NCBI RefSeq assembly: GCF_001194135.2
Contig: NC_068989.1
Span: 1,203,419-1,267,418, forward strand
DNA from: Octopus bimaculoides
Lineage: Eukaryota
Direction: 5' to 3'
Length of the DNA: 64,000 nt
The translations under genes and the position numbers were made by a program. Of this stretch, positions 1 to 57,103 are shown piece after piece. The notes beneath the pieces were generated by a model, which was not told the DNA's origin, searched no databases, and was given only the letters and a program-made list of their open reading frames with translations. Within the stretch, counting starts at the first letter, position 1, and each line of letters starts with the position of its first letter.

Positions 1-68
1 GCCTGTTGTGTGTGTGTCTTTGTGTCTGTCGTCCCTCCCCAATGCTTGCCAACCAGTGTTAGGGTGGA

Positions 69-7787: not shown

Positions 7788-8916
7788 CTCGAGTGCTTCA
7801 GCAGCGGTGATGCTATCTAATCTGGATTTGCCAAGCAAATGGTTAGAATGATGATGATGACACACACACGCACACGTACACAAGTATGCATGCATACACA
7901 CATGCTCACAAACACAAACTTACATATGTGTATGCATGAATGTGTGTATGTGTGTGTATATATATATATATGAATATCCATCTCTCTCTCTCTCTATGTA
8001 TGTGTGTGTGTGTGTGTGTGTGTNNNNNNNNNNNNNNNNNNNNNNNNNNNNNNNNNNNNNNNNNNNNNNNNNNNNNNNNNNNNNNNNNNNNNNNNNNNNN
8101 NNNNNNNNNNNNNNNNNNNATATAGCCACAACCATTGTTTTAGCCACCATTTTTCCATGCTTCCACAAATCAGACAGAATTTAATTTGCCAGATTTTCAA
8201 TGGGTGGATGCTCTTCCTGTTGTCAACCCTTATCATCTGTTTATGAATTGGTTGATATTTCCTCATATCCAGACATGTTTTCATAGAAGATTGGTAATAA
8301 ATGACTCTTCTTGTGTAATGGTGATGCTTGCTTGCATCTCTTACAGAATGTCTAAACAAGCAAAACATACACACACACTATTTCCTATCAGTCTTCTCTG
8401 GCGGAAAAAGCAGGAATAATTTATGCAAATTCAAACATTGTGGTAATGTTGGCACAAATATATTTTAATACCTGAAAAACCTTATTGTTGGCCAGTCAAT
8501 TATTTGGTGTCAGGCCTGTAGAAGTAATGGAACTTGTTTGTCAGGCAGATAGACTGAGGCTGTAAATGATGAAATGAGCCGTTTTGCTCACAGTAGCAAC
8601 AGTTTGTCGAATAAGATTAGTTACTAAGCCAGAAACATGGCAGCATATATCTACACATATACACAAATGTGTCTGCAAGTATGTGTATATGTACATCTGT
8701 TAGTGCCATGTATTTATGTATACCTATTAATACATTCAGCTGATTGAATGGACTGGAGCAACATAAAATAAAGTGTCTTGCTCAAGGACACAATGTACCA
8801 GCGGGAATTGAACTCTCAACCTTACAATCAAGAGTCAAATGCCCGAACCATTAACCACTCTTTTTTAGAGTGGTGTCATCAAACAACACATTTGCTCTGT
8901 TACGCACACGCACACA

Positions 8917-8951
<35 letters not shown>

Positions 8952-9597
8952 CTGCATGTCCAGAGTTACATAATACTTGTAAAGCTGTCCGCATTTCCTG
9001 TGATTCGTGTAAGTTTGATATTCCATACATTGTGCACCAACTGGCCTGCAGTTTATTGATGCTGGTGTTGGTTGCTATGGTCACAAATGGTTCCTGATTA
9101 GATCATATTAGATTAAAAATCACTTCCATTGAAGACGTCTCCAGACCAGCGCTCACTCACGTCTCCAAACACTGAAGCATTTACCAACGTTGACAAGCTT
9201 TCACTTTCATCCTTTTGTCTGCTTTGTTTGATTAATNNNNNNNNNNNNNNNNNNNNNNNNNNNNNNNNNNNNNNNNNNNNNNNNNNNNNNNNNNNNNNNN
9301 NNNNNNNNNNNNNNNNNNNNNNNNNNNNNNNNNNNNNNNNNNNNNNNNNNNNNNNNNNNNNNNNNNNNNNNNNNNNNNNNNNNNNNNNNNNNNNNNNNNN
9401 NNNNNNNNNNNNNNNNNNNNNNNNNNNNNNNNNNNNNNNNNNNNNNNNNNNNNNNNNNNNNNNNNNNNNNNNNNNNNNNNNNNNNNNNNNNNNNNNNNNN
9501 NNNNNNNNNNNNNNNNNNNNNNNNNNNNNNNNNNNNNNNNNNNNNNNNNNNNNNNNNGGATTTGGTGGGTGGAAATTAAAAGAATCCTGTTGTGTGT

Positions 9598-14252: not shown

Positions 14253-17200
14253 GTAAGTCCTCATCTCGACACAGACTGACTCCTTCTCATTGAAACCTCT
14301 CTGAGATAGATAAGTGACAGCTACAAGAATTATTTAAAAGGAACATAGCATTAATATAACTTTTGGCCTTCTGTTTATGTTCCTTTTTAACCCTCCTCCT
14401 CCTCCTGCAGGAATCAGATATATCCTCTCAAGATCCCATTACCCTCAGTTTTATAAATCAATCTATCATTTGTAGAAGAATGTTATTTTGTGTTGGAATA
14501 CATCATGTTTATTGAGGCAGTGTGGCAGTGTGACTTGCAGAAATACCAATTCCATTTTCTGGTAGACCTTTAACATCATTACTGGAATAACCATGAAATT
14601 CAATTTTGCAGCAATTGGCTAATCACAGGAACCTGATTTCTTTTTGCATGTTTATTTATGCATTTTATCAGATTTGTCTAAATTTTGCAGATCATTCAAT
14701 CCTTGATAACATGGTAACCTACTTAAAATAATTAATTAGCTTAAGGTTAATATGCTGAACCACTAATTACCTGAGCAAGAATTCAAGCCTGTATTGTGCA
14801 AGACTAGTTATATCTCTCTCGTATCATGGATGAAGAGTTATCTCTAGGTGGGACTTGTATATCTGCAAAAGAATGGTTTCACCAAGATTTTAATATCTAA
14901 TTATGCAACAACTAACTTCCTTATGCTAGTATGAAAAAGAAAATAGGGAGGCAGGGGTGGTGGTGGTGGTTTCCCTTTCCCTAATTCTGTTCTCATATTT
15001 TTTCTCAGCATTCTTACTCTAGAAGCAGTCATGCATTTAGGTTTCAGAATCCATAGGAACATGTGTATCTTTTTATCTTTTACTTGTTTCAGTCATTAGA
15101 TTGCGGCCATGCTGGGGCACCACATTGAAGAATTTTAGGCAAAACAAACTGACCCCTGTTCTTATTTTTATTTTAAGCTTGCGACTTATCTTACTGATAA
15201 AAAAAAAAAAAAAATTGTAGGATTTTTTCCTGACTTCTGCCCAGATGTTGGCTACCCTCTACCCAAGGCTCACACTTGAAGCTATTTGTTTACTCTGGCT
15301 CCCTGACATTTTGGTGACAGCCACCTCCTGCTCTGTTGGAATGCTGAATAAATTCTTTGGAATTAAATGTGTTTGGTCATCTCTGTTCTAACACGAAACC
15401 TCTGGCTTTACTTTCCAATTCCCTTCCCAAAATGTAATGTTCTGCTGTCAGTGCGGGCAAACTGCTTAATGGCATTTTGTCTGTCTGTGTGTTTTGAGTT
15501 CAAATTCCACTGAGGTTGACTTTACCTTTCATCCTTTCAGGTCTGGTAAAATAAAGAACCAGTGAAACACTGGGGTCGATGTAATCAACTCCCCCTCCCC
15601 CCATCCCTTTGCAGTTGATTGTGTAGACATTAGCAAAATGCTGAAATGAAATAAAAATCATTTTGCAGAAAATTAAGGGTGTCAATGCCCTGAGAAANNN
15701 NNNNNNNNNNNNNNNNNNNNNNNNNNNNNNNNNNNNNNNNNNNNNNNNNNNNNNNNNNNNNNNNNNNNNNNNNNNNNNNNNNNNNNNNNNNNNNNNNNNN
15801 NNNNNNNNNNNNNNNNNNNNNNNNNNNNNNNNNNNNNNNNNNNNNNNNNNNNNNNNNNNNNNNNNNNNNNNNNNNNNNNNNNNNNNNNNNNNNNNNNNNN
15901 NNNNNNNNNNNNNNNNNNNNNNNNNNNNNNNNNNNNNNCTCCTGCTCTGTTGGAATGCTGAATAAATTCTTTGGAAGTTGTTTAATCCTGGGCCATCGTT
16001 CACCAAGCAGATCTACAATCAAAAGCATTCCAAAATCGACCATCTTGCCTGTATATCAGTAGGGTGTGATTTATGGGAGTGCTGACTGCTGTTTCTAGCA
16101 CAAGTGATCCCATAGAGGCACCTTTGATGGTTGTTGTGATGATGGTAATGATGATGATAGTGTTGGGAGTTGGGGTGCCAGTGATGTTGTTGTGATCCTT
16201 CCACTTTTGTTTTTCAATGTAGTCTCTGTGATTCTAGGACAATTTAAGTGGGTGGAGGGGACAGGGGGAGGGTTAGGGCTTAAGAACTGGTAATGTAACC
16301 ATAGCAATGGTAGGAGATGGTGCAGTGGCAGTCTATACAGAAATAGTGTATAGGTGGTGGTGGTGGTGGGAAGTGTTTGTTATATATTTACTATTTATAG
16401 TGGGAAAGGGGCCGTTATATAATGCTGTTATATTAAACATGTTAGGGCGTCTCTTAATGTTTGGATTTCAGAGGAAAGGGGAATTCTCACACTTTGTCAG
16501 TGTGTGAGGGGAAGGAGGAGTGCTATGAATTTAGTTTGGAAAGAAAAACATTGAAGGCAGCGAAATTGGTAGAAAATCAGTTTTGGCTCTGTGTGCTTCA
16601 GGTTCAAACCCCATCAGTGAACTTTGTCTTTTATCGTTCAATATATAGATTGGTAGGGGTTGGTTAGCAGGTAGGTGATTAGATAGGTAGGTAGGTAGAT
16701 CTTTTAAAAGAAGCAGCTTATTACAATATTGCAAGACAGAAATATGAATCTCTATTCTCTCTTTCTGTCTCTCTCTCTCTCTCTCCCTCTCTTTCTCCTC
16801 TTCTCTCTTTGTCTTTGATAAACACAAATGAATTTCTAAACATGATTGTTAAAAACTTGGTTAAATTATAAAGATATCACCTTCGAAAACTAAAAATTTC
16901 TTATTTTCAATAGTTGTGTCTTAATAATTTAACTAAATGCTTTTAGTCAGTGCTATGGACTAACACTCTCCCCTCTAAATTACTGGCCTTCTGCCTAAAT
17001 CAGAGACCATCNNNNNNNNNNNNNNNNNNNNNNNNNNNNNNNNNNNNNNNNNNNNNNNNNNNNNNNNNNNNNNNNNNNNNNNNNNNNNNNNNNNNNNNNN
17101 NNNNNNNNNNNNNNNNNNNNNNNNNNNNNNNNNNNNNNNNNNNNNNNNNNNNNNNNNNNNNNNNNNNNNNNNNNNNNCTGTCGCTATGTTCTGAGTTCAA

Positions 17201-17404: not shown

Positions 17405-17674
17405 ATGGTGTTGAGGAGACAAGCAACAGTAGTTCAAGCTCGACAGCTACTCAATGCCATTGCGTATATCAAGCAACAGAAACAAATCCCCAACTTGGAG
17501 CGCATCACGCGCTACATGCAGCGAGAACACAAAGTTCCTCCCTCCGAAACCCACAAGCAGCTGCAGAATGCAGTCAAAGACAACTTCATCTTTTCTTACA
17601 CTGCCATTGGCAACAAAGGTTCCAAGACTGGGATGGAACAGAAAGGATACAAGATTTCTGATGAAAGTGAGCTG
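17405..17674 (+). CDS. ZMYND11: ZMYND11/BS69 coding exon 1 (SAMD1-like winged-helix domain)
   Basis: MVLRRQA...LLNAIAYIKQQKQIPNLERITRYMQREH...KGSKTGMEQKGY resembles the human ZMYND11 N-terminus ([28 protein letters not shown]...KGSKAGIEQEGY). Acceptor tttttcag ends at 17358, an in-frame TGA lies at 17369 upstream of the ATG, and the donor is CTG|gtaagg (phase 0). Confidence 0.95.
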
Positions 17675-18689
17675 GTAAGGAATCTTTGTTTTACAATCTC
17701 TTTTCCCCTACAAAACTGCTGAGCCGGCAGAACGGTTAGCACGTTGGATGGAATGCTTCCTGGCAGTTCTTCTGACTTTATGTTCTGAGTTTAAAAATCC
17801 GTTGAGATCAACTTTACCTTTCATCCTTTCGGGGTTGATAAAATATCAGTCGAGGACTGAGGTCAATATAACTGATTAGCCTCTTGACCCCAAATTTCAG
17901 GCCTTTTGTGCCTCTAGCTTGAATGGACGCTGTATCGTTGTTGTAGGTGGGGCCTACAACAGAGTATAAAAACTCTGACACTGGTCCCTGTTTCTAGAGG
18001 CTGTTAGGGGCTGTTAGGGTGTGATGGTCACATTACGGACACAAACGTAAGCAACCACTTACAGTGCTAATTTCAATTGTTCTTGTGGAAAACCATTCCA
18101 CAATGGGTTGAGGTTGGAGGGTCACATCATGTTTGGCAGTGCTTCTGCTTCTGCTGAGAGTTGAAAGTTAGTGTCTTGGCTACTTTGTTTGGCTTTTCCT
18201 GACAGTATTTCCACTGCTTTTGGTATAATTACAGATTACCAAAATGACAGGGTGTATGTTTGTATAAGTTTGTGCCTTATTATCATTGAGGGTCCATTTT
18301 CCATGCTGGAATGGGTTGGACAGTCTAAGAGGAACTGCCAAGCCACTGGGCTATGATGAGCACCCACTATCATCTTTGGTATGGTTTCTATGGCTGGATG
18401 CCCTTCTAATGCTATCCACTTTACAGAGTGTACCGGGTGCTGTTCTCGTGCATATATGTCAGTATGTAGTGTTTCATTAGATGAAATTGCTCAGTTGCCA
18501 ATGTTCTATTGACCTTGAACAATGAGAGAAGTTGGTTTGTTTCTATCATTTCTGCCACTGTTACATCAGAATGGATTCTCTATCAATGGGTCTCTCAACA
18601 ACTCCCTTCTATTTTAACTCTAGTCGGCCCTTTACTGCAACTCTTAAACTAATTCAGCGATTGCATTGTTTTTGTATTGTTCTTTGCAG

Positions 18690-18842
18690 GTTGATGATGG
18701 CCACGACTGGTATTGTTTCAAATGCCATGGTCCAGGAGATGTTATTAGCTGCAACAAATGTTGGCGTGTTTTCCATTTAAGTTGCTTTGAAGAAGAAGAA
18801 TCTTATACTAATGGTCACAAGCACATATGTTATATTTGCAAG
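18690..18842 (+). CDS. ZMYND11: ZMYND11 exon: PHD finger
   Basis: VDDGHDWYCFKCHGPGDVISCNKCWRVFHLSC...CYICK is a C4HC3 PHD finger (human [28 protein letters not shown]). Boundaries tttgcag| and |gtaaag; 153 nt, phase 0/0. Confidence 0.97.
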
Positions 18843-19924
18843 GTAAAGAAATTAAATTCAATCTAACAACCCCACCCCCACCCTTTATTTCAGTTTCAGT
18901 TTTTAAAAAGAAAGAAGAAAATGTCTGAAATTAGTTTTCCTTGTGAACCGTTTCACATTTTGTGTTTTCTATGACTAACAATATTGAAATAGAATTTTGT
19001 TTCACTTCTTCAGTTTCTTTGTTTCATTTCAAAAATTATTTTGTTAGACAAACCAACTTCATGAATCCTATAATTGTAAAAAAATTGAAATATTTCATTA
19101 TTGGTGGCCTTATTTTAGAGATGAATGCCCCAAAACCCTCTCAGATACTTTTTTTCATCACTTAGAAGAGGAAGTGCAGAACCTGTGATTTTTTTTGTAG
19201 GGTTACCAAGGCTGAAATCAACTTGTGGGTTATTCTCAGACCTGATCTCAATATTTACAACCGATTGGGCCCAGTTAAAGACTCTTAAGGACCAGGTGTG
19301 GGGGATCAAACTAGTTGACAAATGAGGTCTACCACTCAAGAATATATTTCAGTTTATATGATCAACTTCTGAACTGTTTCCATTCACAAAGTCTGAGGAA
19401 GAAGACCCTTACGTAAGGTGCCACACAGTGAGATGATAGCCAGGTGAATATGCAGCGAGCCCTTTAAAAAGCATCCAGTACATTTTGTAAAGTGTTTGGC
19501 ATTAAGAAAAGTATCCAGCCATAGGAACCGTGGTAGAGAAGACAAATGGAATCTGGTGCGGCTCTCCAGCATGTCAGCTCTTCTCTCAAACCCTCTGATC
19601 CATGCCAGCATGGGAAGCAGACATTAAATGATGATGATGATGATGATGAAACAGTTTTCATATTGTTTCTACAGCTCAGTCCATTTGGTTGCTCTACTTT
19701 GGAACCAGATCATCAAAGTTTTGTTTCTCACCCCCNNNNNNNNNNNNNNCCCTTTCATGACCAAATTTTATTCCCATTGTTTACTGCTTTGTTGCTCTTG
19801 TGGTGAGTGAAAACGACTGCTTTGTCATGTATTTCAGTAAATAAAAAAAAAATCCATAAAATTATTTCCAAACTGTTGCTATATCTTAACCAATATTCTT
19901 GTATTCTCTTTCTGTTCCTCTTAG

Positions 19925-19933
19925 GACATGCAG
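19925..19933 (+). CDS. ZMYND11: Candidate 9-nt microexon of ZMYND11 (DMQ)
   Basis: cttaac branch-point-like motif at 19885-19890, then a pyrimidine tract and ttag|GACATGCAG|gtaaac. It is frame-preserving in a phase-0 intron. No transcript evidence is available. Confidence 0.5.
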
Positions 19934-21054
19934 GTAAACCAATTTCTCAGCATCTATTTTATATGAAAATGCAAATTATTCTCTCTCTCCTTTTTTTTTT
20001 TTTTTTTTTTTTGTTTTTGTTGTCTTAGACTTGCACAAACCATGCTGATAATCTGCTTCACCAATTCTTTATGTTTGTGAAGGGTTTTTGCAAGACTCTG
20101 TACATTTTTATTCAAGAGGTAAAAGGAAAATAAATGAAAGTAAGAAACAGTAAAAAAAAAAAAAAAGGATTTAAATGCAAAGAAAAAACAAAGAAATAAA
20201 TATTAATGATAAATTCTAAAATGGGAATATTATACGCTTTCTTGAAGAAAATGGTAAATGGTGTGCTGAATTGACATCGATCATTTATACTGGATGATGA
20301 TGATGATGATGATGATGATAAAGGTGATGATGATGATGATGATGATAAAGGTGATGATGATGATGATGATGATGATAAAATGATAAATAACAAAAATCTT
20401 GACTAAAACTAATCATGTCAGTTAATGATCGATTGCAATATTGGTAAAAACATGTTCTTTATCCAATATTTTACTTCTTGAAACTTAGACTTTTTTTTTA
20501 CATTTAGTTTAATTCTTGCTTTATTTTTATATATAGATTTAAAAAAAAAAATATTATTTGCATCTTTCTTTTTGAAAATCTTTAATTGTCATTTTTTTTC
20601 TTCTTCTTCTAATTTTTGTTTGTTTAGCTTTTTTATACCTGCCAATCTGAAAGCTATTTCTGCATTAAATGCACGTTTCCTTTAATTAGTATTTGAATTG
20701 TATTAGCAAGGTTTGCCAGTTTTCTTTTAACCCCTGTCTCTAGACTAGGTTTTGCATATTTGCTCAGACCTTCCTTATAAACTTGTGTTGAGTGCAGTCC
20801 TCCAGAGTTCTGTTTCTGTTTTGTTTTGCACACTGTCATGTTAATTTACCTCCCACAGCTCTAGAAAACATTTCATATTAAAGTTTAATATGAATTATGA
20901 TCTATAGAGATTCACAGCTGGCCAAGTGAATGATGTGACAATACATTATAGAAATGGTTAATGTTTCATTTCTCATCACCAGTCTTGTAATGACCATCAC
21001 TAAATACATTTATCATATGTATAATGTATGTACACACACATATGCATGTATGAT

Positions 21055-21615
21055 TGTTTGTTTGTTTATTTGTTCTATTTTTAATTATTCTTGCAAGGAA
21101 GGAGCTGGTCTCTAACAAAGATACAAAGCTCCAGATAATGAAAGCAATGTCACATTTTAAACTTGAAGAAAGTCTTGTATATTTTTACTGTTCCACTTAC
21201 AGATTGTATTTGTAATATGTGAATCAGTTTGGTTGATTTCTTTGTTCTGAAAACCCTAGTGTGTCTAGATTGTCACTTAGTCATTTACTCACGGAACCAA
21301 ATGTACCAGTTCTTATTGGTATAAATGGGAAATTATAATCTGGATTATAGAAACTGGAGGTTCCGAAGCAATTGTCTATTGTTATTCTCTTTCTCTTCGA
21401 TTTTCAAAGAGATATTCACACCCGCAGGACAGTTGACTTCAATGATGGCACATACTTCTTTTTGTCTGTCCTGAACAATGATATCTGGTCTGTTGTTTAC
21501 TCTTGACAGAAGTTTTGATGGAAATGCTTCACCGGTATTCCTTGTGTGGATGTTTATCTATGTATTCAATAACAGGGGCATTTTCCATATCTGTCCCAGG
21601 ACACTCTGTCCTGAG
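21055..21615 (-). mobile_element. Degenerate R4/Dong-like non-LTR retrotransposon 3' end (restriction-like endonuclease domain)
   Basis: PVIEYIDKH..KEY...NNRPDIIVQDRQKEVCAIIEVNCPAGVNISLKIEEKENN..LLRNLQFL...LQIQSVSGTVKIYKTFFKFKM*, with frameshifts; PD-(D/E)xK-type RLE motif. Confidence 0.8.
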
Positions 21616-24600
21616 ATGAGTATATGAGTGCTCAACCTAAAATTATTTCCCCTTAATAAAGCTACTATACACCAAGAAATGTATAATGTTCAATGGAGCT
21701 ACAAACTTTATTGACATAGAATCTATGTGAATCGATTACAAGCAGAGGATGCTCCACTGATTCTTGGAGTCATTGAGAATCATCTGTTGGTAAATAGAGA
21801 CCAAGTACTGCATGATTCTGGTTCTGTTGCAAGCAGTTTGGTCATGGCTTTCTCCAACTTGTTCCAGAGGCTCTGAAAATGGTCCAGAGCATTGTTTTTT
21901 CCTCTGATTAAGCCAGAATTTCTTTTAGATATTTAAGTGTGATGTAAAACGAAACATACCCAACTGATCTCCAAATCACAGACTTTGTCTGGCTGTGACA
22001 GGAATTTGGTTCCAAAACAAAGAGGAATGTTTTGTCTGCAGATGAAATTTCAATGTAAACTCAGCAGTGTAGCCTGGGATAGTATCTTTTGGTAAACACA
22101 GTTGATTTCTGGTGCTTAATATGTCTAATTAGCTCAATGTTAATTTGTCAGCTAGAAGAGGTGGCTGTCACCACCTGGCAGGTATTGGTTTTTAATTTAA
22201 AACTGTATTAGAACTGTATGTCACCTGTAATCTGTTCCTAACCAGTAACTTGTATGAGAAGAGTCTGTTGACATTAGGCAAGAGTAAGTGTAAATGCCTC
22301 ACTCGTCAGCTTGAAATGGCTGGTGTTTTAGCTCCAGTTGTATGGTGTTAGGTGGGTGAGAGATTGAACCTCTCCCTATGTAGGATGCAAGTCCACCTTG
22401 GATGACAATTCTTAATGATCTGGTACATATTTCTGACAGTTAAGTGAAATGATTGTATCAATAATTTAAATAGACAAATACAGATTGAAAGACTTTGCAG
22501 TGAGTTTGATTTGAATGTAAAGCTTATAAGCTGGGATCACAGTTATTAGGCCGTTCCATTTGTACAGCAGCTGGTAGGAATTAGCTGGAATCTTGACATA
22601 TTGGCTTGGAGCTGTGCTGTAATCCTCTCATTGACAACTTGTAGGAGTAGAGTTGGCTTCGACAATCTGAGGAATAAGCGCTGTTCTGTGATTCGGTTCC
22701 TTACAATTATACATTGTAATTGATCTTGTTAAAGAAGTATCATCTTGTTTTGATGGAATTCAATGAGGAGGACGGGAGGATGGAGGGAGCAAACTTTGGG
22801 AGGGGGAGGGGGTGTTTGAGAGGAAATGGTTGAGAAATAGAGAAAGCTGGTTGGAGGAAAGAAGAGGTGGGTGAGGGTGGGGGTAATATGAAAGGAAGAC
22901 AAGTGGTGGAGAGAGAGAGAAGAGGGAGGAGGAGGAGGAAGAATGCTGAAACAGGACAAAACAGAAGTTTGTAATTTTAGTCATTATTAGTGTTCCATAT
23001 TTATAGAGGCCAATAACCTAACAAGAAGTTGTGGAAAGTGGAGGAGGGAGAACATGGGTTCCAGCACCCCCTCCCCCTCCACTTCCGCTTGTCCCCCCCC
23101 ACTTTTGTTCTCTTTTTTCTGGTTCCAGTTATGGAGCTATTTATTCTTGGTTACTTAAATAATCTCCATTTTTTTTCCTTCTTGTTTCATCTCTCCTCAC
23201 ACCATTCCTCTGAGAAGTCCCCCCCCCCCGCCAACTTTACATTCCACACAGCACATGAAACAACTGACAACACTACAATCTCAAAGGTTGTCGGTTCAAA
23301 TCTGCTGTAAATACTTTGTTGCCTCTAATAATGAGTGACAGAGGTTTAATCAGTCGAGTGATAATGGAGAGCACAGCATCTCGGTTATTTCTGACTGATG
23401 GTCATATCAGGATTGATGGAACAAGTACCAGTCAAATACTGGGGTTGAGGTAATTAAAGTTCCTACTCCTGGATCAAGATCAGTAATCCTCCTCCTCCTC
23501 CTGGTGTGCAGTTGTCCCCACGTAAAAGTGGAGGTTACAGTTAGAACACAGAATATTGGATTATTTGCTCAGGGAAAATAATGTAGCAGTTTGTGTTGTA
23601 AAACGACCTCCACTGCTAAGTTGGAAATTAAGGTTGCCTTTTGGTTTTAATATTGCTTCTGTCACTGTATTAATTACTTGTTTTAATAGGCTCATTGGCT
23701 TTTTGCGATACCAGTGCTTGATTAGACACTGAGCTTCTAAGTATTGCTGACAAAGGAATCACTGCTTTCTCTAGCATCAGGCATCTGCCCTTGACAAGGC
23801 CAAGGAAGGCTAAAATCATGTGATCTGAAGTCCCAGTGGTGATGGCAGAGGATTATCTCCTGCTAGCGATATAAACATGAGTGCTTCTATGCACCATAAG
23901 TCCATTAGACCAATTCTCTCTGGGCAAATAATGCAGTTTTCTACATTCTAACAAAACATCAACCTTCACATGGGGATAAATATTACCTCTTGGTTATTAA
24001 TACTCTTCTGCCGCTATTAATTATTTTTTATGGTGTGTAGTTGTTTGTGAAAGGATGGTCTCTGTCCGGCTGACGTGTACTTCATAAATAACTCAAAGAG
24101 CAAGTCTTCAGCTGGTGCCTCAATAACTTTTGATTACATTTACACATAATTTATTGAGTTACTTAGCTTGACACCCCACAGTTTGTTTCGTTAGTATCAC
24201 AGGGTCATTATACACATCTGCCACAGTGTTAATGAGAAAGCTTCTACATTTTCACTTGATCTGCTAGAAATAGCAGTAATATCTTCTTCAAATCGCACCT
24301 TACTATCTTAATTATGGAGAAGAAATGTAGCTTTAGAAAGACAAAATAATTATAGTTGAAATGTTTTTGAGCATAAAACAGCTCAAAGAGGGCTGACCTG
24401 GTGCTAACAACAACTGTCACTGTTTTTGAGACGACAAGGGAACTGCTGTATGCTAGAAATAGCAGCCAGATCTGCTTGAAAATTCTACCCTTTTGTCTTA
24501 AAAAAGGGAGGTCACATTGGTTACCCTAGTATATGTGCTGGTCAGGGCTAGGAAGCCTTTGATGAGAGTTATACTCAATCAGGCAAAGTCAACTTCAGCA

Positions 24601-24677
24601 GAATTTGAACTCAGAAAGTAAAGACTGATGAAATGCTGCTAAACATTTTGTCTGGTGTGATAATGATTCTGCCAGCT

Positions 24678-24683
24678 CATCAT

Positions 24684-24743
<60 letters not shown>
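24678..24743 (+). repeat. (CAT)n followed by a CAA-interrupted (CAG)n tract
   Basis: Seen directly in the sequence; it lies between two retroposon pieces. Confidence 0.9.
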
Positions 24744-24744
<1 letters not shown>

Positions 24745-24770
24745 TCTCATGGCTTCTGATCTTAACTGAT

Positions 24771-25494
24771 TGGAAGTGTTATCATGTACATTGTTTTGTC
24801 TTGGGGTATCAAAGATGGCCTACAGCAAATATTCTGGTTAATACCACAGATTTGCTTGTCAGTTGTTTGACCTCAACCAGTTGAGCATGTCCCTTGGTGG
24901 CTGACGATATGTGCATCTCTGATCACGAGCAGAAGTAGTGGGGGAGCATCATAGCCATGTGTTGAAAGGAATTCTTTGGAGTTTGGATAATTCACCTTTG
25001 GAAACATGGGTGTTTTGTTCAACATCCTTAAACAACCCTTATTCAGGGACCTTTTGAGTGGGATGGGCTACTCGACCCCAAGAAAATTCTAACTGGGCCC
25101 CACCTGCGAGGTCATGCACTGTTTATCTTGATATGAGATCAGTATGTTGCGCACATATGGTTGTGATGCATGTGCCTGGTGTACCCTTATCGGACGGGTA
25201 GTCATGATGGGTATACTGGGCTTCGTATGGAAGTGTTATCATGGACACTGTTTTGTCTTTGGTATAAAAGATGGGACTACAGCAAATATTCTGCTCAATA
25301 CCACAGATCTCTTTGTCAGTTGTTTGACCTTGACCAGTTGAGCATGTCCCTTGGTGGCTGACGACATGTGCATCTCTGATGAAGAGCAGAAGTAGTGTGG
25401 GGAGCATCATAATCATCATGGGAACACTGGGCTTCATATATTTTACCCCAGTGTCACTTTGATGGCATGCACTGCTCTCTCACTCAACAACAAC

Positions 25495-25526
<32 letters not shown>
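24771..25526 (+). mobile_element. Retroposon 3' region with a 183-bp internal direct duplication and (AAT)n tail
   Basis: 24771-24953 is repeated at 25228-25411. The element ends ctctcactcaacaacaac(aat)n. Confidence 0.7.
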
Positions 25527-25530
<4 letters not shown>

Positions 25531-26103
25531 GCTGCTTCTGCTAGGCTTGGTACGCATGATCAGTCACCTAAATTGATTCAATGACAACAGCTGTAGCATC
25601 ACTGCTGCCCCACCACCACCACCACCACAACAACAAAATTATTTCCTATAATGACAAATTCCTTTCCAATAGATTCTTTGATTCTTCATATGAAAAAAAA
25701 GAAAAAAAGAAAAGAAATGAATGTGTTTGTTTGATGCCATTTGATATTGATTTAATCCTTCTGGAACATTCTGGACTTGAAGAATGAGTTGTCTCCCCAA
25801 CCTCCACATCCGTATTATTACCACCACCACCACCACCACCTCCTTCCCCTCCACCATTTACAGCATTTCTACTTTCACCACTACCACCATTACTACCACC
25901 GACATACTACCACTATCTTTACTAAGAACTGCCACTGCCATCGCCACCACCACCACCTTTTTTACTACTACTACTATCCTGAACTCTGCAACGTCTGCCA
26001 TCACCCCCCCCCCACTGATCAATACTTGTATTTGGTTTGAAGCTGATGTTCCAAGTATTGATTTCACTGGCTCTGACAGATGGACAGGCTCACTCCACAC
26101 TGG

Positions 26104-26143
<40 letters not shown>

Positions 26144-26921
26144 ATGGGACATCATACAATGACAAAGCCACAACACAAACCTCTCAGTTGAGGAGAATCA
26201 ACCAACGGTTGGCATTGTCTTGAAGGATGACCATTGGGGAAAGTTTGGTTATCTGGTGTGTACTTTTTTTTTTTAGGGGTCCATCATGTCATTGCTGAGC
26301 CGGCTGGTGATCAAAGACCTTTTAGCCATGACCATCCTGTCCTGTAGAAGACAGGCAGTGTGTGATTCATTTGAGATTTGGCTGTTATTTTTGTGGGCCC
26401 AACGACTATGGAGAAGTTCCCTTGATGGGTGCATCCAAAATGCTGTTGCTAGTCGTCATTGTCATCATCACCATTCTCGTTATTACAAACCTAATTAGAA
26501 TCATTAACAATATAATTTTCATTGTCCTTTGGTTAAACTTCCTGGATTTCCTTACAATCTCCAGCATCATTTTCCATTCACACTTGATTTGTATTTATTC
26601 ACCTCTTTTTACACAGACTTACTGCAAGAATATACCCTCCATAGGTCTTTCTCTTACTCCACTTACAAGCACACTATACACTGCCCTCCTCCTCCTCCTC
26701 CTCCTCCCTCCCTCCCTCCCTCCTATTCCTCCATCTGTATTGTATTGTCAATGGCTGAGAGAATGGTGGTGCCAAACTTCTGGATCTTAGACTTTACCGT
26801 TTGTGTCCTGTGGGCAAGCACGACATGCTATATAATTCATATCACATAAAATCTTTTGATAAAGCACAAAATACCCTGGCTTTTAGCTTCCATGTTCTTA
26901 TTAAATATTCATATCATCCCT

Positions 26922-26956
<35 letters not shown>

Positions 26957-27018
26957 GTAAATGAGTGCATGTCGTTATGCAAAATATTTTGCTACAAACA
27001 CAAGAACTTGCATATAAT

Positions 27019-27049
<31 letters not shown>

Positions 27050-27151
27050 TAAAGGCAAATATGTATATATATATATTTTTGTATATAATGTACTGTTCCA
27101 TGATGGTCAGATCAACAAAAAAGGTACTCCATCTAGTGTGAGATAAATATT

Positions 27152-27375
27152 TTTTAATAAACACAATATATGTTTTTATGTGCTAATATTAGTTTCATGT
27201 GCTGAGAGCATGCCAGACAGCATAGCAGATAGTATGCACAATCATCAGACACTGCCATGTGCGCAATGTCTGATGATTGTGTTAGGACACCAGACATGTT
27301 AAAAAATACTGTCTGGCATGCTCTCAACACGAGACTAATAGTAGCACATAAAAATATATATCGTATTTATTAAAT
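27152..27375. mobile_element. Fold-back MITE with ~75-bp TIRs and a nested internal hairpin
   Basis: tttttatgtgctaatattag...gagagcatgccagacag is inverted at 27309-27375. The inner cacaatcatcagaca (27237) pairs with tgtctgatgattgtg (27267). Confidence 0.8.
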
Positions 27376-27754
27376 AATTATATATAATTGTGATAACAGT
27401 TTGACTCAGCTCCATATGGTTTAAAGTTTTGTGGGCCCATACTTTTGAATAATATATATAACCCCGACCAACTGTGTTGAGTGCCACATTCTTTCATTTG
27501 TCCAGTCATTTGTGTGTATGTGAGTGTGCGTGTTGTATTCAAATATGCACACACACACACACACACACACGGATATATAACTGTGAGCCAGATAGATTTA
27601 AAACGTCAATAAACTCTGACCTAAAATGAATGTGAAGTCTTACAGATATTATTCTCTTTTATATTAAACAGAAAAGACCTAATCAAACCATCTTTACTCA
27701 TATCTCTGTCTTCTCTTTCTCTCTTTCTTTCTTTCTTTCTCTTGCTTTTACCAG

Positions 27755-27760
27755 AAACAG
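27755..27760 (+). CDS. ZMYND11: Candidate 6-nt microexon of ZMYND11 (KQ)
   Basis: cctaat branch-point-like motif at 27678-27683, about 75 nt AG-free pyrimidine tract, TGC at 27743, and ccag|AAACAG|gtatgt. It is frame-preserving. Confidence 0.55.
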
Positions 27761-28298
27761 GTATGTACTCCTCTTTCGCTCTTACTCAAACTTGCACCTT
27801 TTTACATTTTTTTTTTTTTTAATATATTCTTCCTTTTTTTTTCCCTGGGGTTTTCGGTCATTTATATCCCAATATTTATTTACCATTTTATCCCACCCCT
27901 ACCTTATTCTGTTTTTGCTTGGTTGCTTCATCGAAATGGTTATTAGAGTGTTCACTTAGTAACAAATATCAAATGGAAGAAGCCTCCATTAATTTTCAGA
28001 CTTTCATTGTAACCTGGTGCAGGTGAGAAAAATAGTGAAACAAAAGGATTCCCAGTGCAAAATTAGAGGTTAATTATCTTCTACCTTTCTATTTGTCCAT
28101 ATTTGTTATATGTTATTATTATTATAAGAAGTTTGTTTCCCAACCACATGGTTCTGGGTTCAATCTCACCGTGTTGCATCTTGGGCAAGTTAGCTTCTAC
28201 TATAGCCTTGGGCTGACCAAAGCTTTGTGGGTGGATTTGGTAGGTGGAAACTGCAACAAGCCCGTTGTATATGTATGTGTGTGTGGTTTTGTTACCTT

Positions 28299-28706
28299 GG
28301 ACAGATTGTATGACATTTGTGTTAGAAGTGAAATGCTGCATGGTAATGGAATATGGGCATTGAATGGAGAGGACTTGAAGAGAGAGGAAAGCTAGTATGT
28401 TCCAATGTGAGTGTGAATGAACAACATGGTGTAAATGTTCAAAGACTGGACAAAAGAGGAATCAGATGTGGTGTGCATGAAAGAAGACTGCACTGGGACA
28501 GATAGATGATGCATATGGATGCGGACGGCTGTATGAAGAAGTGCCAATCACTAAATGTGATTGGAGTTTGTGGAAAAGGGAGACCCAGGAAGATAAGGGC
28601 CAAAATGATTAAGGCTGGCCTCAGGATCCTGAACCTCATTGAGATGACGACGAAGGACTGAGATGCCTGATGCTATGTGGTTCTTCACAAGACTTGCCCA
28701 TTGCAG
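28299..28706 (+). mobile_element. Degenerate RTE LINE 3' coding remnant
   Basis: LYDICVRSEMLHGNGIWALN...RRLHW...CMKKC..GVCGKGRPRK...VVLHKT, with stops and frameshifts; typical RTE C-terminal motifs. Confidence 0.85.
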
Positions 28707-28915
28707 TGAAACTAATGCACTCTATGCATATGTGTGTGTGTATTATACCTGTATTGTATGTGCACAGGTGAGCATCTCTCCCAATCTCCTCCCTTATGTC
28801 GCTCTCCTTTTGCATCTCTCTCACCATAGCTCTCTCTTTCTCTCTCTCTCTCATTTTCTCTCTCTCTCTTTCTCTCTCTCTCTCTTTCTCTCTCTCTCTC
28901 ATTTTCTCTCTCTCT

Positions 28916-28951
<36 letters not shown>

Positions 28952-31010
28952 TGTGAGTTGCCATTTTAGCTTCTCAAGAACCTGCTTTGCCTCCCCACCT
29001 CCTTCTCTCATACCTTAACCCTCATTCCTTGCATCAAGCTGTCTCCCCACCCCCCTCAGGTTCAGTAGCCTCGGGATATATATGGAGGACCCCACTAGTG
29101 CCTGTAATATGGAAAAAAACACACCTAGTATATGCTATGAAGTGGTTGGTATTAAGATGGGCACCCAAACATAGAAGCCATGCCAAGGCAGGCATTAGAG
29201 CACCACGTCTTAGAATTCATTGGATCCTGTCTGTCTCACCCAATGATGATGATGATGGCTGTTGCGAGGGGGGATACATACTAAACCACTGATGCCAGGT
29301 TCATGTGATCATTATTTTCTACAGCTTCTGGGTGATGTCTCCATAGTGATATGATACACACAAACCCACACACACACACAGATTATATCATTGTTAAACT
29401 GTAAGCTGTGCAAAAAGAAAAAAGAAAAAAAAAACTCCAAAAAAACCCCACATACTGCAATGATATGTAAATATTTTTCCAAAATTCTGCAATAAATGTT
29501 TACAAAAAACTTAATCCTTCCTCTCTGCTAACATGGTGAAATATCGTGCCATTTGTAAGGATGTATGTGTGGCACTTCTTCCTGAGGGCATTTTTGTGTT
29601 TTGAAATAATTAAAAACCTAAGAAAACATTCATTTAATAAGCTTCTGTCTGTGTTTCTACCATTCTTTCTTTCTTTTATTTTTTGTTGGTCAAATGGAAT
29701 GTGAGAAACATGTCACCTGCTTTCTTTTCTTTGATTCTCTGCCCCCTTCCCCCTTGTCTTCCAGTTTTTCTTATCCTTTTATGATAAATAATGTCATCTT
29801 TGCTGAGAATTTTTAAACAGCTTTCTATAATCACAAAACACATGTTAGCATGGAGAATAATGTATGTAAAAGAACTATTAGTCACATGCATGTACACACG
29901 TGTGTATGTGTGTGTGTGTATAGTATTCTTTAGTAAAAATAATGTTGACAGTGACTGAAGTTTTGACCTACTGACCCTTTATCAAGTAGTGGTACATTTG
30001 ATTTCATCTTGACTTTGTATAATCTGTTTAGTTTAAATTTTCAGGAGCAGGTGAAACTCTGTTGAATGATAATTTCATTGAAGTGCAGTTTCTGATGGAA
30101 AGATATTATGGAAGATTTTAATTGATTAAATTTGGGGTTGTACTATTGTTCAGAATTCAGTTATGCATGTAGAAGTTGGTAATCAGGTGTGTTAGCTTCA
30201 GTTCTTTGGAGATGCTCTTGTAGAGGTTCACAAATGAGTGAGGGTAAGTGGAAAGGTTAATTGGTCAGTAGGTTTATTTACTTGTTTGTATTATTTAGGA
30301 AGTTTAATCTGTTTGTTTTGGGAAGGTAAAGACCATTGTTCAGATTTCAGTGAAGCATGCAAGACTCTGTGAATCGGTCAATTTGTTTGACTAAGACCCT
30401 TCGTGACAATGCTCCAGCATGGTCTTAGTCAAATGAATGAAACAAGGGAAAGAATAAAAGGATATACATACACACATTATACACATATATGTATATATCT
30501 TTTAATTGTTTCAGTCATTAGACTGTGGCCATGCTGGAGCAGCGCTTTGAAGAATTTTAGTCAAACTTATCAACCTCAGTATTTTTATTATTTTATCATC
30601 TTTAAAGATGAGTTTGATACGAAAGAAAGTGATGATGTTATTTCAAAGAGATGTTAACTGCAGTGTGCGTTGAATAGTTTCTTGGAGGATAGCATTGGTG
30701 CTGGTGCCATTTAAAAAATACCCAGTCCACCCTGTAAAGTGGTTGGTGTTAGGAAGGGCATCCAGCTGTAGAAACCATGCCAAAACAGACAATGGAGCTT
30801 GGTGTGGCCCCTGGCCTTGCCAACTCTTGTCAAGCTGTTCAACCCATGCCAGCATGGAAAACGGATGTTAAATGATGATGATGATGAAAGTGACCTAAAC
30901 TTGTTTATACCCTCCTCTTCAGTCTTTCAGTTGGTCCCTAGTTGTTATGGAACCTATTTAAAAGAAATCCCTATTTCATGATACTCTAAAACTCTTGTAA
31001 TTATTTCTAG

Positions 31011-31085
31011 GCTGGACACAATCGGATCCGAGGAAATATGCTAAACACTCTTCTGGGTTACACAGTGCAAAGGTTGAAAGAAAAG
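31011..31085 (+). CDS. ZMYND11: ZMYND11 exon: bromodomain start
   Basis: AGHNRIRGNMLNTLLGYTVQRLKEK resembles human MGTYLRFIVSRMKER. Boundaries ttctag| and |gtttgt; 75 nt, phase 0/0. Too short for the ORF track. Confidence 0.9.
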
Positions 31086-31776: not shown

Positions 31777-31957
31777 ACCCGGGAGTTGCACAGAATCGGA
31801 CACAGGGACGAAGAGTTGAACTTCAAACGATTTGTTTACAAACCAATGGATCTGAACACCATGGAGCAAATAGTACAGAGCCAGAAGTACCGTTGTGTGG
31901 AAGAGCTTGTTGCTGATGCCCATAACATTGTGCATAATGTATATTTGGTATACGGAG
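31777..31957 (+). CDS. ZMYND11: ZMYND11 exon: bromodomain core
   Basis: TRELHRIG...FKRFVYKPMDLNTMEQIVQSQKYRCVEELVADAHNIVHNVYLVYG. Boundaries ctgtag| and G|gtaagg; phase 0/1. Confidence 0.96.
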
Positions 31958-32926: not shown

Positions 32927-32982
32927 AGGAGCATGGAATGACGGAATTAGCCCGGATCATGATACGTGATTGTAAATATGAT
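32927..32982 (+). CDS. ZMYND11: ZMYND11 exon: bromodomain end
   Basis: (E)EHGMTELARIMIRDCKYD resembles human SEQADIARMLYKDTCHE. Boundaries tttcag| and |gtaagt; 56 nt, phase 1/0. Confidence 0.93.
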
Positions 32983-34832: not shown

Positions 34833-34910
34833 ATTGATGAGATTTGTCAGTGCTGGAATTGTTACTACATGTCAAACTCTAAACCTGCAAATTGGTTTTG
34901 TAAGCCATGT
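34833..34910 (+). CDS. ZMYND11: ZMYND11 exon: bromo-PWWP zinc finger
   Basis: IDEICQCWNCYYMSNSKPANWFCKPC resembles human [26 protein letters not shown]. Boundaries ttgcag| and |gtaagt; 78 nt. Confidence 0.96.
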
Positions 34911-35417: not shown

Positions 35418-35539
35418 AAACCACACCATGAACTTGTTTACGCAAAACTGAAAGGCTTTAGCTACTGGCCTGCCAAAGTCATTCGGGTAACGGAAGATAG
35501 TAAACATGATGTCCGCTTTTTTGGGGGCTACCATCAAAG
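35418..35539 (+). CDS. ZMYND11: ZMYND11 exon: PWWP domain, part 1
   Basis: [41 protein letters not shown]. The aromatic cage positions (F, W, F) are retained. Phase 0/2. This exon is not represented in the + strand ORF track. Confidence 0.97.
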
Positions 35540-36439: not shown

Positions 36440-36513
36440 GGCTCTCATCCCTCAAGACTACATTAAACCCATTAGTGTGAATATTAAGACAGTGACATCC
36501 AAACGAACCCAAG
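36440..36513 (+). CDS. ZMYND11: ZMYND11 exon: PWWP domain, part 2
   Basis: (R)ALIPQDYIKPISVNIKTVTSKRTQ resembles human [25 protein letters not shown]. Boundaries ttctag| and G|gtaagt; phase 2/1. Confidence 0.94.
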
Positions 36514-36641: not shown

Positions 36642-36898
36642 GGTTTATAAAAGCCTGCGAGGAGCTGAAGCTACATCGCCAGTTGTTAGAAGAACAAGTT
36701 GATGAAAGCAGCAACAATGGAGACAGTGAGATGGAAAACAATATGGAGGAAGATGATGAGGAAGAGGAGGATGAGGAGGAAGATGATGATGACGATGATG
36801 ATGATGAAGATGAAGAAGCAGACGATGACACCGAGACTCGTGAGGTCACTTCAACTAGTGTGGCTCCCCCGAAAAATACATCCAAGCTGAAAACAAAG
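36642..36898 (+). CDS. ZMYND11: ZMYND11 exon: PWWP end plus long acidic tract
   Basis: (G)FIKACEELKLHRQLL (human GWKKACDELELHQRFL) is followed by a D/E run. Boundaries ttgcag| and |gtaatg; phase 1/0. Confidence 0.94.
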
Positions 36899-37727: not shown

Positions 37728-37850
37728 ATCCTGACACCAGAAAATGTGAATGTTGTCTCTTCAAGTGTAGATAAAATATCAACAAGCCCCGCACCACGTT
37801 CTTCAAAGGTTGCCTATAAGCATACTGCTAGTCAAGCAACTCCATCCACG
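37728..37850 (+). CDS. ZMYND11: ZMYND11 exon: S/T-rich linker
   Basis: ILTPENVNVVSSSVDKISTSPAPRSSKVAYKHTASQATPST. Boundaries tttttgcag| and |gtgagt; 123 nt, phase 0/0. Weak similarity to the human linker (VSSSQE...KVSVSTQT). Confidence 0.82.
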
Positions 37851-43137: not shown

Positions 43138-43284
43138 GTTAATAAGTTTGTACAGAGTGATACCAGTAAGAAAAGTTGCAACTGTCAAGATGAATTGTCT
43201 AATTTGTTAGATGACTTCAAGAGAAAAACTGAAACTGAACACAAGAAAGAAATTGAACAAACAGAGAAAAGAGTGTCTGACCGG
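43138..43284 (+). CDS. ZMYND11: ZMYND11 exon: coiled coil, part 1
   Basis: VNKFVQSDT...CNCQDELSNLLDDFKRKTETEHKKEIE resembles human [26 protein letters not shown]. Phase 0/0. Confidence 0.92.
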
Positions 43285-44364: not shown

Positions 44365-44550
44365 CTCCAAAAGGAGTTTGAGATTGATAAGCAGCAGGCT
44401 GTTGCTAGAGCTGTGACAAATATGCAGAGAGAAATTGACCGAGTTCGCCGCCAGACAACAGAGAAGATCAAAGAACAATATATGGAAGAGATGAAAAAAT
44501 TGTCTAAAAAACATAAGGAATATATTTCCTATGTAAAGAAAAAACAATGG
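44365..44550 (+). CDS. ZMYND11: ZMYND11 exon: coiled coil, part 2
   Basis: LQKEFEIDKQQAVARAVTNMQREID...EEMKKLSKKHKEYISYVKKKQW (human KRQAVNKAVANMQGEMD...TKKKQW). Boundaries ttccag| and |gtaagt. Confidence 0.97.
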
Positions 44551-46820: not shown

Positions 46821-47111
46821 TGTTTCTTCTGTGGAGAGGAAGCTATGTACCATTGTTGCTGGAATACGGCCTATTGCAGCAAAACGTGCCAAAAGGACCA
46901 CTGGCAAAAAGAACACAAAAACGATTGTCGAAGGCCGCGGCCGAAACCCAACACTACACAGCAGCAGGAACAACAACAGATCGACAGCGACAGCGACAGC
47001 AGCGACGGCAACAACGGGAATCGTACTCATGGTCATGGAAGCAGCAACTTCAGTTTAAGCGGCAGCTCTGGCAGTAGAGACGGCAGCTGTAAAAGCGCCC
47101 TTTACTATTAG
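46821..47111 (+). CDS. ZMYND11: ZMYND11 terminal exon: MYND finger plus C-terminal extension
   Basis: [38 protein letters not shown] is a MYND finger (human [38 protein letters not shown]). Acceptor ttttag|; stop TAG at 47109-47111. Confidence 0.97.
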
Positions 47112-48080: not shown

Positions 48081-48096
48081 ACATACCGATAATCCC

Positions 48097-56457: not shown

Positions 56458-57103
56458 NNNNNNNNNNNNNNNNNNNNNNNNNNNNNNNNNNNNNNNNNNN
56501 NNNNNNNNNNNNNNNNNNNNNNNNNNNNNNNNNNNNNNNNNNNNNNNNNNNNNNNNNNNNNNNNNNNNNNNNNNNNNNNNNNNNNNNNNNNNNNNNNNNN
56601 NNNNNNNNNNNNNNNNNNNNNNNNNNNNNNNNNNNNNNNNNNNNNNNNNNNNNNNNNNNNNNNNNNNNNNNNNNNNNNNNNNNNNNNNNNNNNNNNNNNN
56701 NNNNNNNNNNNNNNNNNNNNNNNNNNNNNNNNNNNNNNNNNNNNNNNNNNNNNNNNNNNNNNNNNNNNNNNNNNNNNNNNNNNNNNNNNNNNNNNNNNNN
56801 NNNNNNNNNNNNNNNNNNNNNNNNNNNNNNNNNNNNNNNNNNNNNNNNNNNNNNNNNNNNNNNNNNNNNNNNNNNNNNNNNNNNNNNNNNNNNNNNNNNN
56901 NNNNNNNNNNNNNNNNNNNNNNNNNNNNNNNNNNNNNNNNNNNNNNNNNNNNNNNNNNNNNNNNNNNNNNNNNNNNNNNNNNNNNNNNNNNNNNNNNNNN
57001 NNNNNNNNNNNNNNNNNNNNNNNNNNNNNNNNNNNNNNNNNNNNNNNNNNNNNNNNNNNNNNNNNNNNNNNNNNNNNNNNNNNNNNNNNNNNNNNNNNNN
57101 NNN
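56458..57103. other. Assembly gap (others at 5900-5994, 8024-8120, 9237-9557, 15698-15938, 17012-17177 and 19736-19749)
   Basis: Runs of N. Confidence 0.99.

Follow-up and report, generated by a model that had tools for sequence, protein, structure and literature searches.

Within a 64,000-nucleotide stretch of the Octopus bimaculoides genome (NC_068989.1, positions 1,203,419 to 1,267,418, RefSeq assembly GCF_001194135.2; hereafter, the window), the six nucleotides AAACAG at positions 27755-27760 of the plus strand are best explained in full as a real, frame-preserving cassette microexon of the gene encoding ZMYND11, a reading to which we assign a probability of about 0.82. The exon adds Lys-Gln (KQ) to the connector between the PHD finger and the bromodomain of the protein. 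Such an insert had been called from the letters of the DNA in an original prediction, and the call was correct, given that the site is unique in its intron and that a RefSeq protein isoform threads exactly across it. Since RefSeq protein models made public for two octopus species already contain the exon, it is known rather than a discovery. The exon and the signals that surround it, all on the plus strand, are as follows (slashes here and below mark exon boundaries).

27677-27752, plus strand: AG exclusion zone of 76 nucleotides (read from the sequence).
27679-27683, plus strand: branch-point-like CTAAT (CUAAY), opening the AG-free zone and kept in O. sinensis; a putative branch point (read from the sequence).
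27701-27749, plus strand: polypyrimidine tract, 46 of 49 positions pyrimidine, rich in UCUC/UCUU (read from the sequence).
27743-27745, plus strand: TGC (UGC) motif at -12 to -10 of the 3' splice site, of putative function (read from the sequence).
27753-27754, plus strand: AG of the 3' splice site (ccAG), score 11.0 (splice-site scoring).
27755-27760, plus strand: microexon AAACAG, Lys-Gln, coding exon 4 of isoform X1 (exact threading, unique in the intron).
27761-27766, plus strand: 5' splice site GTATGT (CAG/GTATGT), score 9.5 (splice-site scoring).

These signals agree with those originally described, namely, a branch-point-like motif, an AG-free zone estimated at about 75 nucleotides, a very strong pyrimidine tract and a TGC 10-12 nucleotides upstream of the exon. 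The core reads ccAG/AAACAG/GTATGT, such that the exon is flanked by AG and GT and, at six nucleotides, lies well within the 27-nucleotide limit for a microexon. The putative branch-point A is found 73 nucleotides upstream of the exon. Pyrimidines make up 95% of the 40 nucleotides preceding the exon, and the tract is underlain by a (TCTT)x8.8 microsatellite at 27705-27740, as detected by Tandem Repeats Finder. As had been proposed, the exon lies in frame in a phase-0 intron of about 12 kb and contains no stop codon, such that its inclusion keeps the reading frame.

The assignment rests on isoform X1 of O. bimaculoides (XP_014773182.1, 675 residues), which threads onto the window at 100% identity in 15 exons, all bounded by GT-AG introns. 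The host intron (18843-31010, 12.2 kb, phase 0 at both ends) separates the PHD finger and bromodomain exons and contains not only AAACAG but also a second, nine-nucleotide microexon. Because the pattern AG/AARCAR/GT occurs only once in this intron, the KQ of the annotated protein can be derived only from 27755-27760. The flanking sequences quoted in the original prediction likewise occur once in the window. The neighbouring exons are as follows.

18690-18842, plus strand: coding exon 2, PHD finger ending in ...HICYICK, phase 0, the upstream constitutive exon (translation, threading).
19925-19933, plus strand: nine-nucleotide microexon GACATGCAG, Asp-Met-Gln (DMQ) (threading, scoring, orthologues).
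31011-31085, plus strand: coding exon 5, AGHNRIRGNMLNTLLGYTVQRLKEK, loop and first bromodomain helix, the downstream constitutive exon (translation, threading).

Use of the exon was considered in a 90%-identity cluster of ten octopus proteins built around the top match. The residues that follow ICK in the RefSeq isoforms are given below.

O. bimaculoides X1 (XP_014773182.1, 675 residues): DMQ-KQ-AGHN.
O. bimaculoides X2: DMQ-AGHN.
O. bimaculoides X3 (XP_014773197.1): AGHN.
O. sinensis X1 (XP_029641210.1): DIQ-KQ.
O. sinensis X2: DIQ.
O. sinensis X3 (XP_036362377.1): KQ alone.
O. sinensis X4: neither insert.
O. sinensis X5 (XP_029641213.1): DIQ-KQ, with another exon skipped.

All four combinations (DIQ-KQ, DIQ, KQ and none) are thus represented among the RefSeq isoforms of O. 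sinensis, X1 of which threads onto the corresponding O. sinensis sequence (L001) with its AAACAG exon at 17756-17761. At the level of annotated isoforms, forms with and without AAACAG exist in both species and, since skipping isoforms are found in each, the exon is not constitutive. The earlier expectation that it would be used with or without the upstream GACATGCAG was thereby borne out. The exon of the RefSeq models and that called here are one and the same (...ICK(DMQ/DIQ)KQAGHN... or ...ICKKQAGHN...), with no difference in sequence. Were the two microexons included independently, four connectors would follow ...CYICK, namely, none, DMQ, KQ and DMQKQ. In transcripts, the corresponding junctions would be TATATTTGCAAG/AAACAG/GCTGGACAC for KQ alone, GACATGCAG/AAACAG/GCTGGACAC for both microexons, GACATGCAG/GCTGGACAC for the nine-nucleotide exon alone and TTGCAAG/GCTGGACAC for neither.

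The strength of the signals was next compared with the background of the window. Every AG...GT pair yielding an in-frame, stop-free exon of 3-30 nucleotides was scored with a generic metazoan 5' splice-site matrix and an acceptor term (pyrimidine tract, YAG and AG exclusion). Among the 313 candidates in the host intron, AAACAG ranked first (21.4) and GACATGCAG second (17.7), with the third candidate scoring 9.8. When the whole window was scanned on both strands (3,339 candidates), AAACAG again ranked first (20.5) and the nine-nucleotide exon third (16.8). The AAACAG acceptor, at 11.0, is the highest scoring of the gene's 14 acceptors. The combination of splice features at AAACAG is well beyond chance.

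Second place in the whole-window scan (17.7) was taken by a minus-strand decoy, cag/GGATTATCG/gtatgt, at 48087-48095. Lying shortly beyond the ZMYND11 stop codon, this decoy owes its signals entirely to two microsatellites, (CT)n upstream and (CA)n downstream, which puts the rate at which repeats mimic splice signals of this strength at about one per 128 kb. In the same intron of O. sinensis (L001:9576-9581) and O. vulgaris (L007:13807-13812), a further high-scoring six-nucleotide candidate, ttag/AAGATG/gtgcag (Lys-Met, KM), was noted behind a (CCT)n tract. As its donor is weak and it appears in no annotated isoform, AAGATG is probably another repeat-made decoy.

Several observations weigh against accepting AAACAG as a real microexon without reserve. 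For the current O. bimaculoides assembly, the recorded product is the 670-residue XP_014773197.1, which contains neither microexon, while an exact look-up of the 675-residue X1 placed it on record on no contig, the protein surviving only in EukProt and UniParc copies. The exon evidence consists of computed XP_ models rather than raw RNA-seq reads. The distribution of the exon is also narrow. A 60-nucleotide window centred on AAACAG is 93% identical between Octopus species, a value matched or exceeded by 34% of intron windows. In the Argonauta hians intron (L002), no credible six-nucleotide exon was found, the best six-nucleotide candidate scoring 1.6. Transcript-derived (Logan) proteins of two other cephalopods, probably decapodiforms, presented DIE or no insert and never KQ, and among some 130 ZMYND11 proteins KQ was seen in Octopus only and in no other mollusc.

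The older X2 isoform likewise survives only in EukProt and UniParc copies. A junction-centred transcript search for KQ returned only a genomic exon fragment of another cephalopod (P0137). The RefSeq KQ models, being computed, come with no stated tissue pattern or function. A six-nucleotide exon would be expected to enter an NCBI model only via transcript alignments. The original prediction had further held that gene prediction would miss the exon. This is true of the 670-residue product of the current assembly and of both O. vulgaris proteins but not of XP_014773182.1, XP_029641210.1, XP_036362377.1 and XP_029641213.1, all of which include it. Neither microexon is found in the two O. vulgaris proteins on record, although O. 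vulgaris DNA holds the pair; the single Argonauta protein similarly lacks microexons, although Argonauta DNA holds the nine-nucleotide exon. Literature searches yielded no description of a microexon within ZMYND11, the ZMYND11 papers being concerned with its regulation of splicing, and nothing specific on microexons in octopus or cephalopods.

The host gene occupies 17405-47108 of the plus strand, the surrounding region (16905-47611) being base-identical to GCA_001194135.2 CM046609.1:1220323-1251029. A tblastn search using human ZMYND11 delineated a complete orthologue on the plus strand at about 17.4-47.1 kb. The best protein match to a concatenated query of 506 residues was O. sinensis ZMYND11-like, while a 76-residue query spanning the PHD-bromodomain exon junction gave no match despite exact matches in the collection, the word index of which is sparse. 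The product contains the precomputed Pfam families SAMD1_WH, Bromodomain, PWWP, ZMYND11_CC and zf-MYND and matches the ZMYND11 structures 4N4G/4NS5 with an E value of 5e-59. The domain content and order predicted from the sequence, WH-PHD-bromo-PWWP-coiled coil-MYND, identify the gene as an orthologue of ZMYND11 (BS69). Its coding exons, as defined by threading of X1 on the plus strand, are listed below.

Exons 1-5, plus strand: 17405-17674, 18690-18842, 19925-19933, 27755-27760, 31011-31085.
Exons 6-10, plus strand: 31777-31957, 32927-32982, 34833-34910, 35418-35539, 36440-36513.
Exons 11-15, plus strand: 36642-36898, 37728-37850, 43138-43284, 44365-44550, 46821-47108.

O. sinensis X5 and the two O. 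vulgaris proteins skip the 147-nucleotide coding exon at 43138-43284 (VNKFVQ...RVSDR, 49 residues), which is probably another alternatively used region of ZMYND11. The PHD exon measures 153 nucleotides in O. bimaculoides (18690-18842) and 156 nucleotides in O. sinensis (L001:3968-4123) and O. vulgaris, the acidic EEEE(E) run being longer by one Glu in the latter two species. The window includes seven N runs representing assembly gaps (5900-5994, 8024-8119, 9237-9557, 15698-15938, 17012-17177, 19736-19749 and 56458-57103), of which 17012-17177 lies just upstream of the ZMYND11 start codon and 19736-19749 lies inside the host intron, 176 nucleotides upstream of the nine-nucleotide microexon.

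In terms of conservation, a check of which had been proposed at the outset, three Octopus species retain the exon, whereas it is absent from Argonauta, squid-like transcripts and the proteins of the other molluscs examined. The sequence TCTCTTGCTTTTACCAG/AAACAG/GTATGTA is identical in O. sinensis (L001) and O. vulgaris (L007), and AAACAG is the top-scoring candidate in the introns of these species as well. Comparison between Octopus species revealed 59% of the intron to be alignable, at 91% identity. These species are thus too close for conservation of AAACAG among them to be informative and, with the neighbourhood of the exon faring no better than a third of intron windows, Octopus-Octopus conservation was rejected as a sign of selection. 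A lone AGAAACAGGT in Argonauta (L002:13417) was also rejected as an orthologue, given its gttctc donor, AGs inside a weak tract, the lack of a TGC and unrelated flanks. From its distribution, the AAACAG exon appears to be a young gain of the Octopus lineage. Its birth may have involved recruitment of the (TCTT)n microsatellite as the pyrimidine tract of a new six-nucleotide exon, in an intron that would already have hosted an ancient nine-nucleotide microexon.

Indeed, many lophotrochozoans have a three-residue insert at exactly this point of the protein, and isoforms or relatives without it are often found alongside. This insert, of the form [D/E]-x-[E/Q], directly follows the C-x2-C-K of the PHD finger, corresponds to nine nucleotides within an intron of phase 0 and, in several species, is optional. 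The inserts and exons identified are as follows.

DIE: oyster-like transcripts.
EMQ: mussel-like transcripts.
EIE: Pomacea and Batillaria.
EKE: Candidula.
EDE: Lingula.
L001:5014-5022: nine-nucleotide exon of O. sinensis.
L007:9274-9282: nine-nucleotide exon of O. vulgaris.
L002:4569-4577: nine-nucleotide exon GACATTCAG of Argonauta hians, the top intron candidate, with flanks alignable with Octopus.
L008:6813-6821: nine-nucleotide exon GAGATAGAG of scallop (threading).
L009:8478-8486: nine-nucleotide exon GAAGACGAG of Lingula (threading).

Being common to cephalopods, bivalves, gastropods and the brachiopod Lingula, the nine-nucleotide ZMYND11 microexon is, on these sequence comparisons, ancient. 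A literature search retrieved no paper describing it. The nine- and six-nucleotide exons share the same intron, phase and protein position and are both optional, the former taking the forms DMQ, DIQ, DIE, EIE, EMQ and EDE. They differ in that the nine-nucleotide exon is widespread, with flanks alignable between Octopus and Argonauta, whereas the six-nucleotide exon is seen in Octopus only. A second microexon also accompanies the nine-nucleotide exon in the scallop Mizuhopecten yessoensis, isoform X1 of which contains an additional 12-nucleotide exon, TCAAACTTACAG (SNLQ), at L008:4543-4554. Like AAACAG, this is a second, lineage-specific microexon beside the nine-nucleotide one; unlike AAACAG, it measures 12 nucleotides, lies upstream rather than downstream of the nine-nucleotide exon and is unrelated in sequence. 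Judged from its sequence and position, the scallop exon is an independent gain, such that a second microexon would have arisen in the host intron on at least two occasions, in the Octopus and scallop lineages.

As for how inclusion of AAACAG is regulated, the eMIC code has been described as comprising long AG exclusion zones, a UGC near the 3' splice site, long UCUC-rich tracts and a strong CUAAY branch point, with the origin of the eMIC domain being placed in the bilaterian ancestor (PMC8797185). In addition, a bipartite UCU_CUC[N1-50]_UGC enhancer of eMIC microexons has been reported (bioRxiv 10.1101/2024.09.17.613571). At AAACAG, a long AG-free zone, a UCUC-rich tract and a distal CUAAY are all present, a UGC lies between the tract and the 3' AG, and the TGC at 27743-27745, together with the upstream UCUC, fits the bipartite pattern. 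The likeness to eMIC microexons extends to the frame-preserving cassette, the strong 5' splice site and a host gene encoding a chromatin regulator. Because this architecture matches that of eMIC-enhanced microexons, neuron-enriched inclusion assisted by eMIC proteins (Srrm234, SRRM3/4) would be the most likely form of regulation, at what we judge to be about even odds. As an exon of six nucleotides is too short to be defined across itself, recognition would depend on strong intronic signals, these being the distal CUAAU, the 76-nucleotide AG-free zone, the UCUC/UCUU tract, the UGC at -12 and the near-consensus 5' splice site.

A substantial, if lesser, possibility is that AAACAG is a real alternative microexon that is neither neural nor eMIC-dependent, being instead included broadly or in some other tissue by virtue of its very strong core signals. 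The two AAACAG splice sites score at least as high as those of the gene's constitutive exons. Mammalian SRRM3/4-dependent microexons present a relatively weak 3' splice-site context (bioRxiv 10.1101/2024.09.17.613571), whereas the AAACAG acceptor is strong; restriction to Octopus is a further difference from such exons. The UGC also speaks less clearly than the original prediction supposed. While only 1.9% of the window's 3,648 AG dinucleotides follow an AG-free zone at least as long as that seen here, a TGC at -25 to -3 precedes 25% of window AGs and is found within 40 nucleotides of 7 of the 14 ZMYND11 acceptors, mostly as tTGCAG. In light of these background rates, the AG-free zone and tract are unusual but the UGC alone is weak evidence; it was accordingly rejected as a stand-alone hallmark and given low weight. 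Moreover, the sister nine-nucleotide exon of O. bimaculoides has no UGC within 40 nucleotides. Set against non-neural inclusion are the co-occurrence at AAACAG of the full eMIC-type feature set and the skipping isoforms of both species, which show that the exon is not constitutive. Microexons of 3-15 nucleotides are, furthermore, predominantly neural in the animals studied.

It is improbable that the KQ isoforms reflect splicing noise or an annotation artefact, with chance apposition of (TCTT)n and CAG..GTATGT having given rise to rare mis-spliced reads that were then made into functionless isoforms. That the pyrimidine tract is a microsatellite, that a repeat-made decoy of comparable score exists on the minus strand at 48087-48095, that the exon is lineage-restricted and dropped from the current-assembly product, and that its conservation between Octopus species does not exceed the intron background would all be in keeping with such an origin. 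Yet AAACAG has independent annotations in two species, each of the four combinations being represented in O. sinensis, is the top-ranked candidate in three genomes, and is in frame, stop-free and in a phase-0 intron at the very protein position of the ancient microexon.

The original prediction had offered recursive splicing as an alternative, the distal CAG/GTATGT (AG at 27759-27760) serving as a ratchet site, or zero-length exon, that subdivides the 12-kb intron, with KQ as a by-product. Here, an intermediate in which exon 2 or the nine-nucleotide exon is joined to GTATGTACTCC (TTGCAAG/GTATGTACTCC or ATGCAG/GTATGTACTCC) would be expected. As at Drosophila and vertebrate ratchet points, an AG/GT lies behind a strong tract in a long intron, the regenerated donor would be strong, and any recursion via the distal AG would leave no trace in mRNA, looking the same as skipping. 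A ratchet point is, however, defined by an AG/GT at the 5' end of the recursive-splice exon (RS-exon), and Drosophila ratchet points are well conserved (PMC8605326). At AAACAG, by contrast, the AG/GT is found only at the 3' end of the exon, the annotated acceptor ccAG/AAACAG regenerates no 5' splice site, the exon is kept in annotated mRNAs, and conservation does not extend beyond Octopus, the site being absent from Argonauta. O. sinensis and O. vulgaris share the putative ratchet site unchanged, although its conservation between Octopus species does not rise above the 91% intron background. In addition, the proximal AG is the first to follow the putative branch point, and KQ isoforms, including one with KQ only, are annotated in two species. 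Finally, 12 kb is short for a recursively spliced intron. The ratchet explanation is thus not needed and is very unlikely; at most, the distal AG could act in this way in a side reaction.

In the protein, the residues encoded by the cassette microexon come after the PHD finger and ahead of the part that aligns with the ZMYND11 bromo-ZnF-PWWP structures 4N4G/4NS5. AlphaFold2 models of the forms with both inserts and with none compare as follows.

Helix ending the PHD finger: residues 138-146 (YICKDMQKQ) with both inserts; residues 138-141 (YICK) with none.
Loop AGHNRIR: seven residues in both models, unchanged.
Start of bromodomain helix alphaZ: residue 154 with both inserts; residue 149 with none.

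In these models, the inserts would lengthen the helix ending the PHD finger from four to nine residues. The predicted local distance difference test (pLDDT) score of the connector, at about 74-77, is moderate and as such tempers this picture. Linkers in paired reader modules act as molecular rulers, and packing of the PHD finger onto the bromodomain has been described for the paralogue ZMYND8 (PMC5177622); the PHD finger of ZMYND11 cooperates with the bromo-PWWP region in histone binding (PMC12839526). The microexons may likewise serve as a length and rotation spacer, or 'molecular ruler', between the PHD finger and the bromo-PWWP module that reads H3.3K36me3; an extension of two, three or five residues would plausibly re-space or rotate the one relative to the other. 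More tentatively, and with the odds against it, KQ could be a recent, neuron-specific and eMIC-dependent microexon of the Octopus lineage that, together with the nine-nucleotide exon, provides a four-step neuronal ruler (0, +2, +3 or +5 residues). As ZMYND11 safeguards brain-type splicing in human cortical progenitors (PMC12511308), such a neuronal ruler, if true, would form a splicing-to-chromatin-to-splicing loop.

At a practical level, these findings indicate that sequence alone can pinpoint a six-nucleotide exon. With a crude score placing two true microexons first and third of 3,339 candidates, such scans could repair annotations that drop microexons. Repair is needed here, given that the current O. 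bimaculoides product and both O. vulgaris proteins drop the exons while the DNA is intact. In itself, the AAACAG exon modifies the connector of an H3.3K36me3 reader only slightly and in a single lineage, and represents no new kind of system. Its main value would be as an example of how a microsatellite can give rise to a microexon, here next to one common to molluscs and a brachiopod. As part of the more tentative reading above, the host intron of ZMYND11 would be a recurrent hotspot of microexon birth, with six nucleotides having been added in Octopus and, independently, 12 in scallop.

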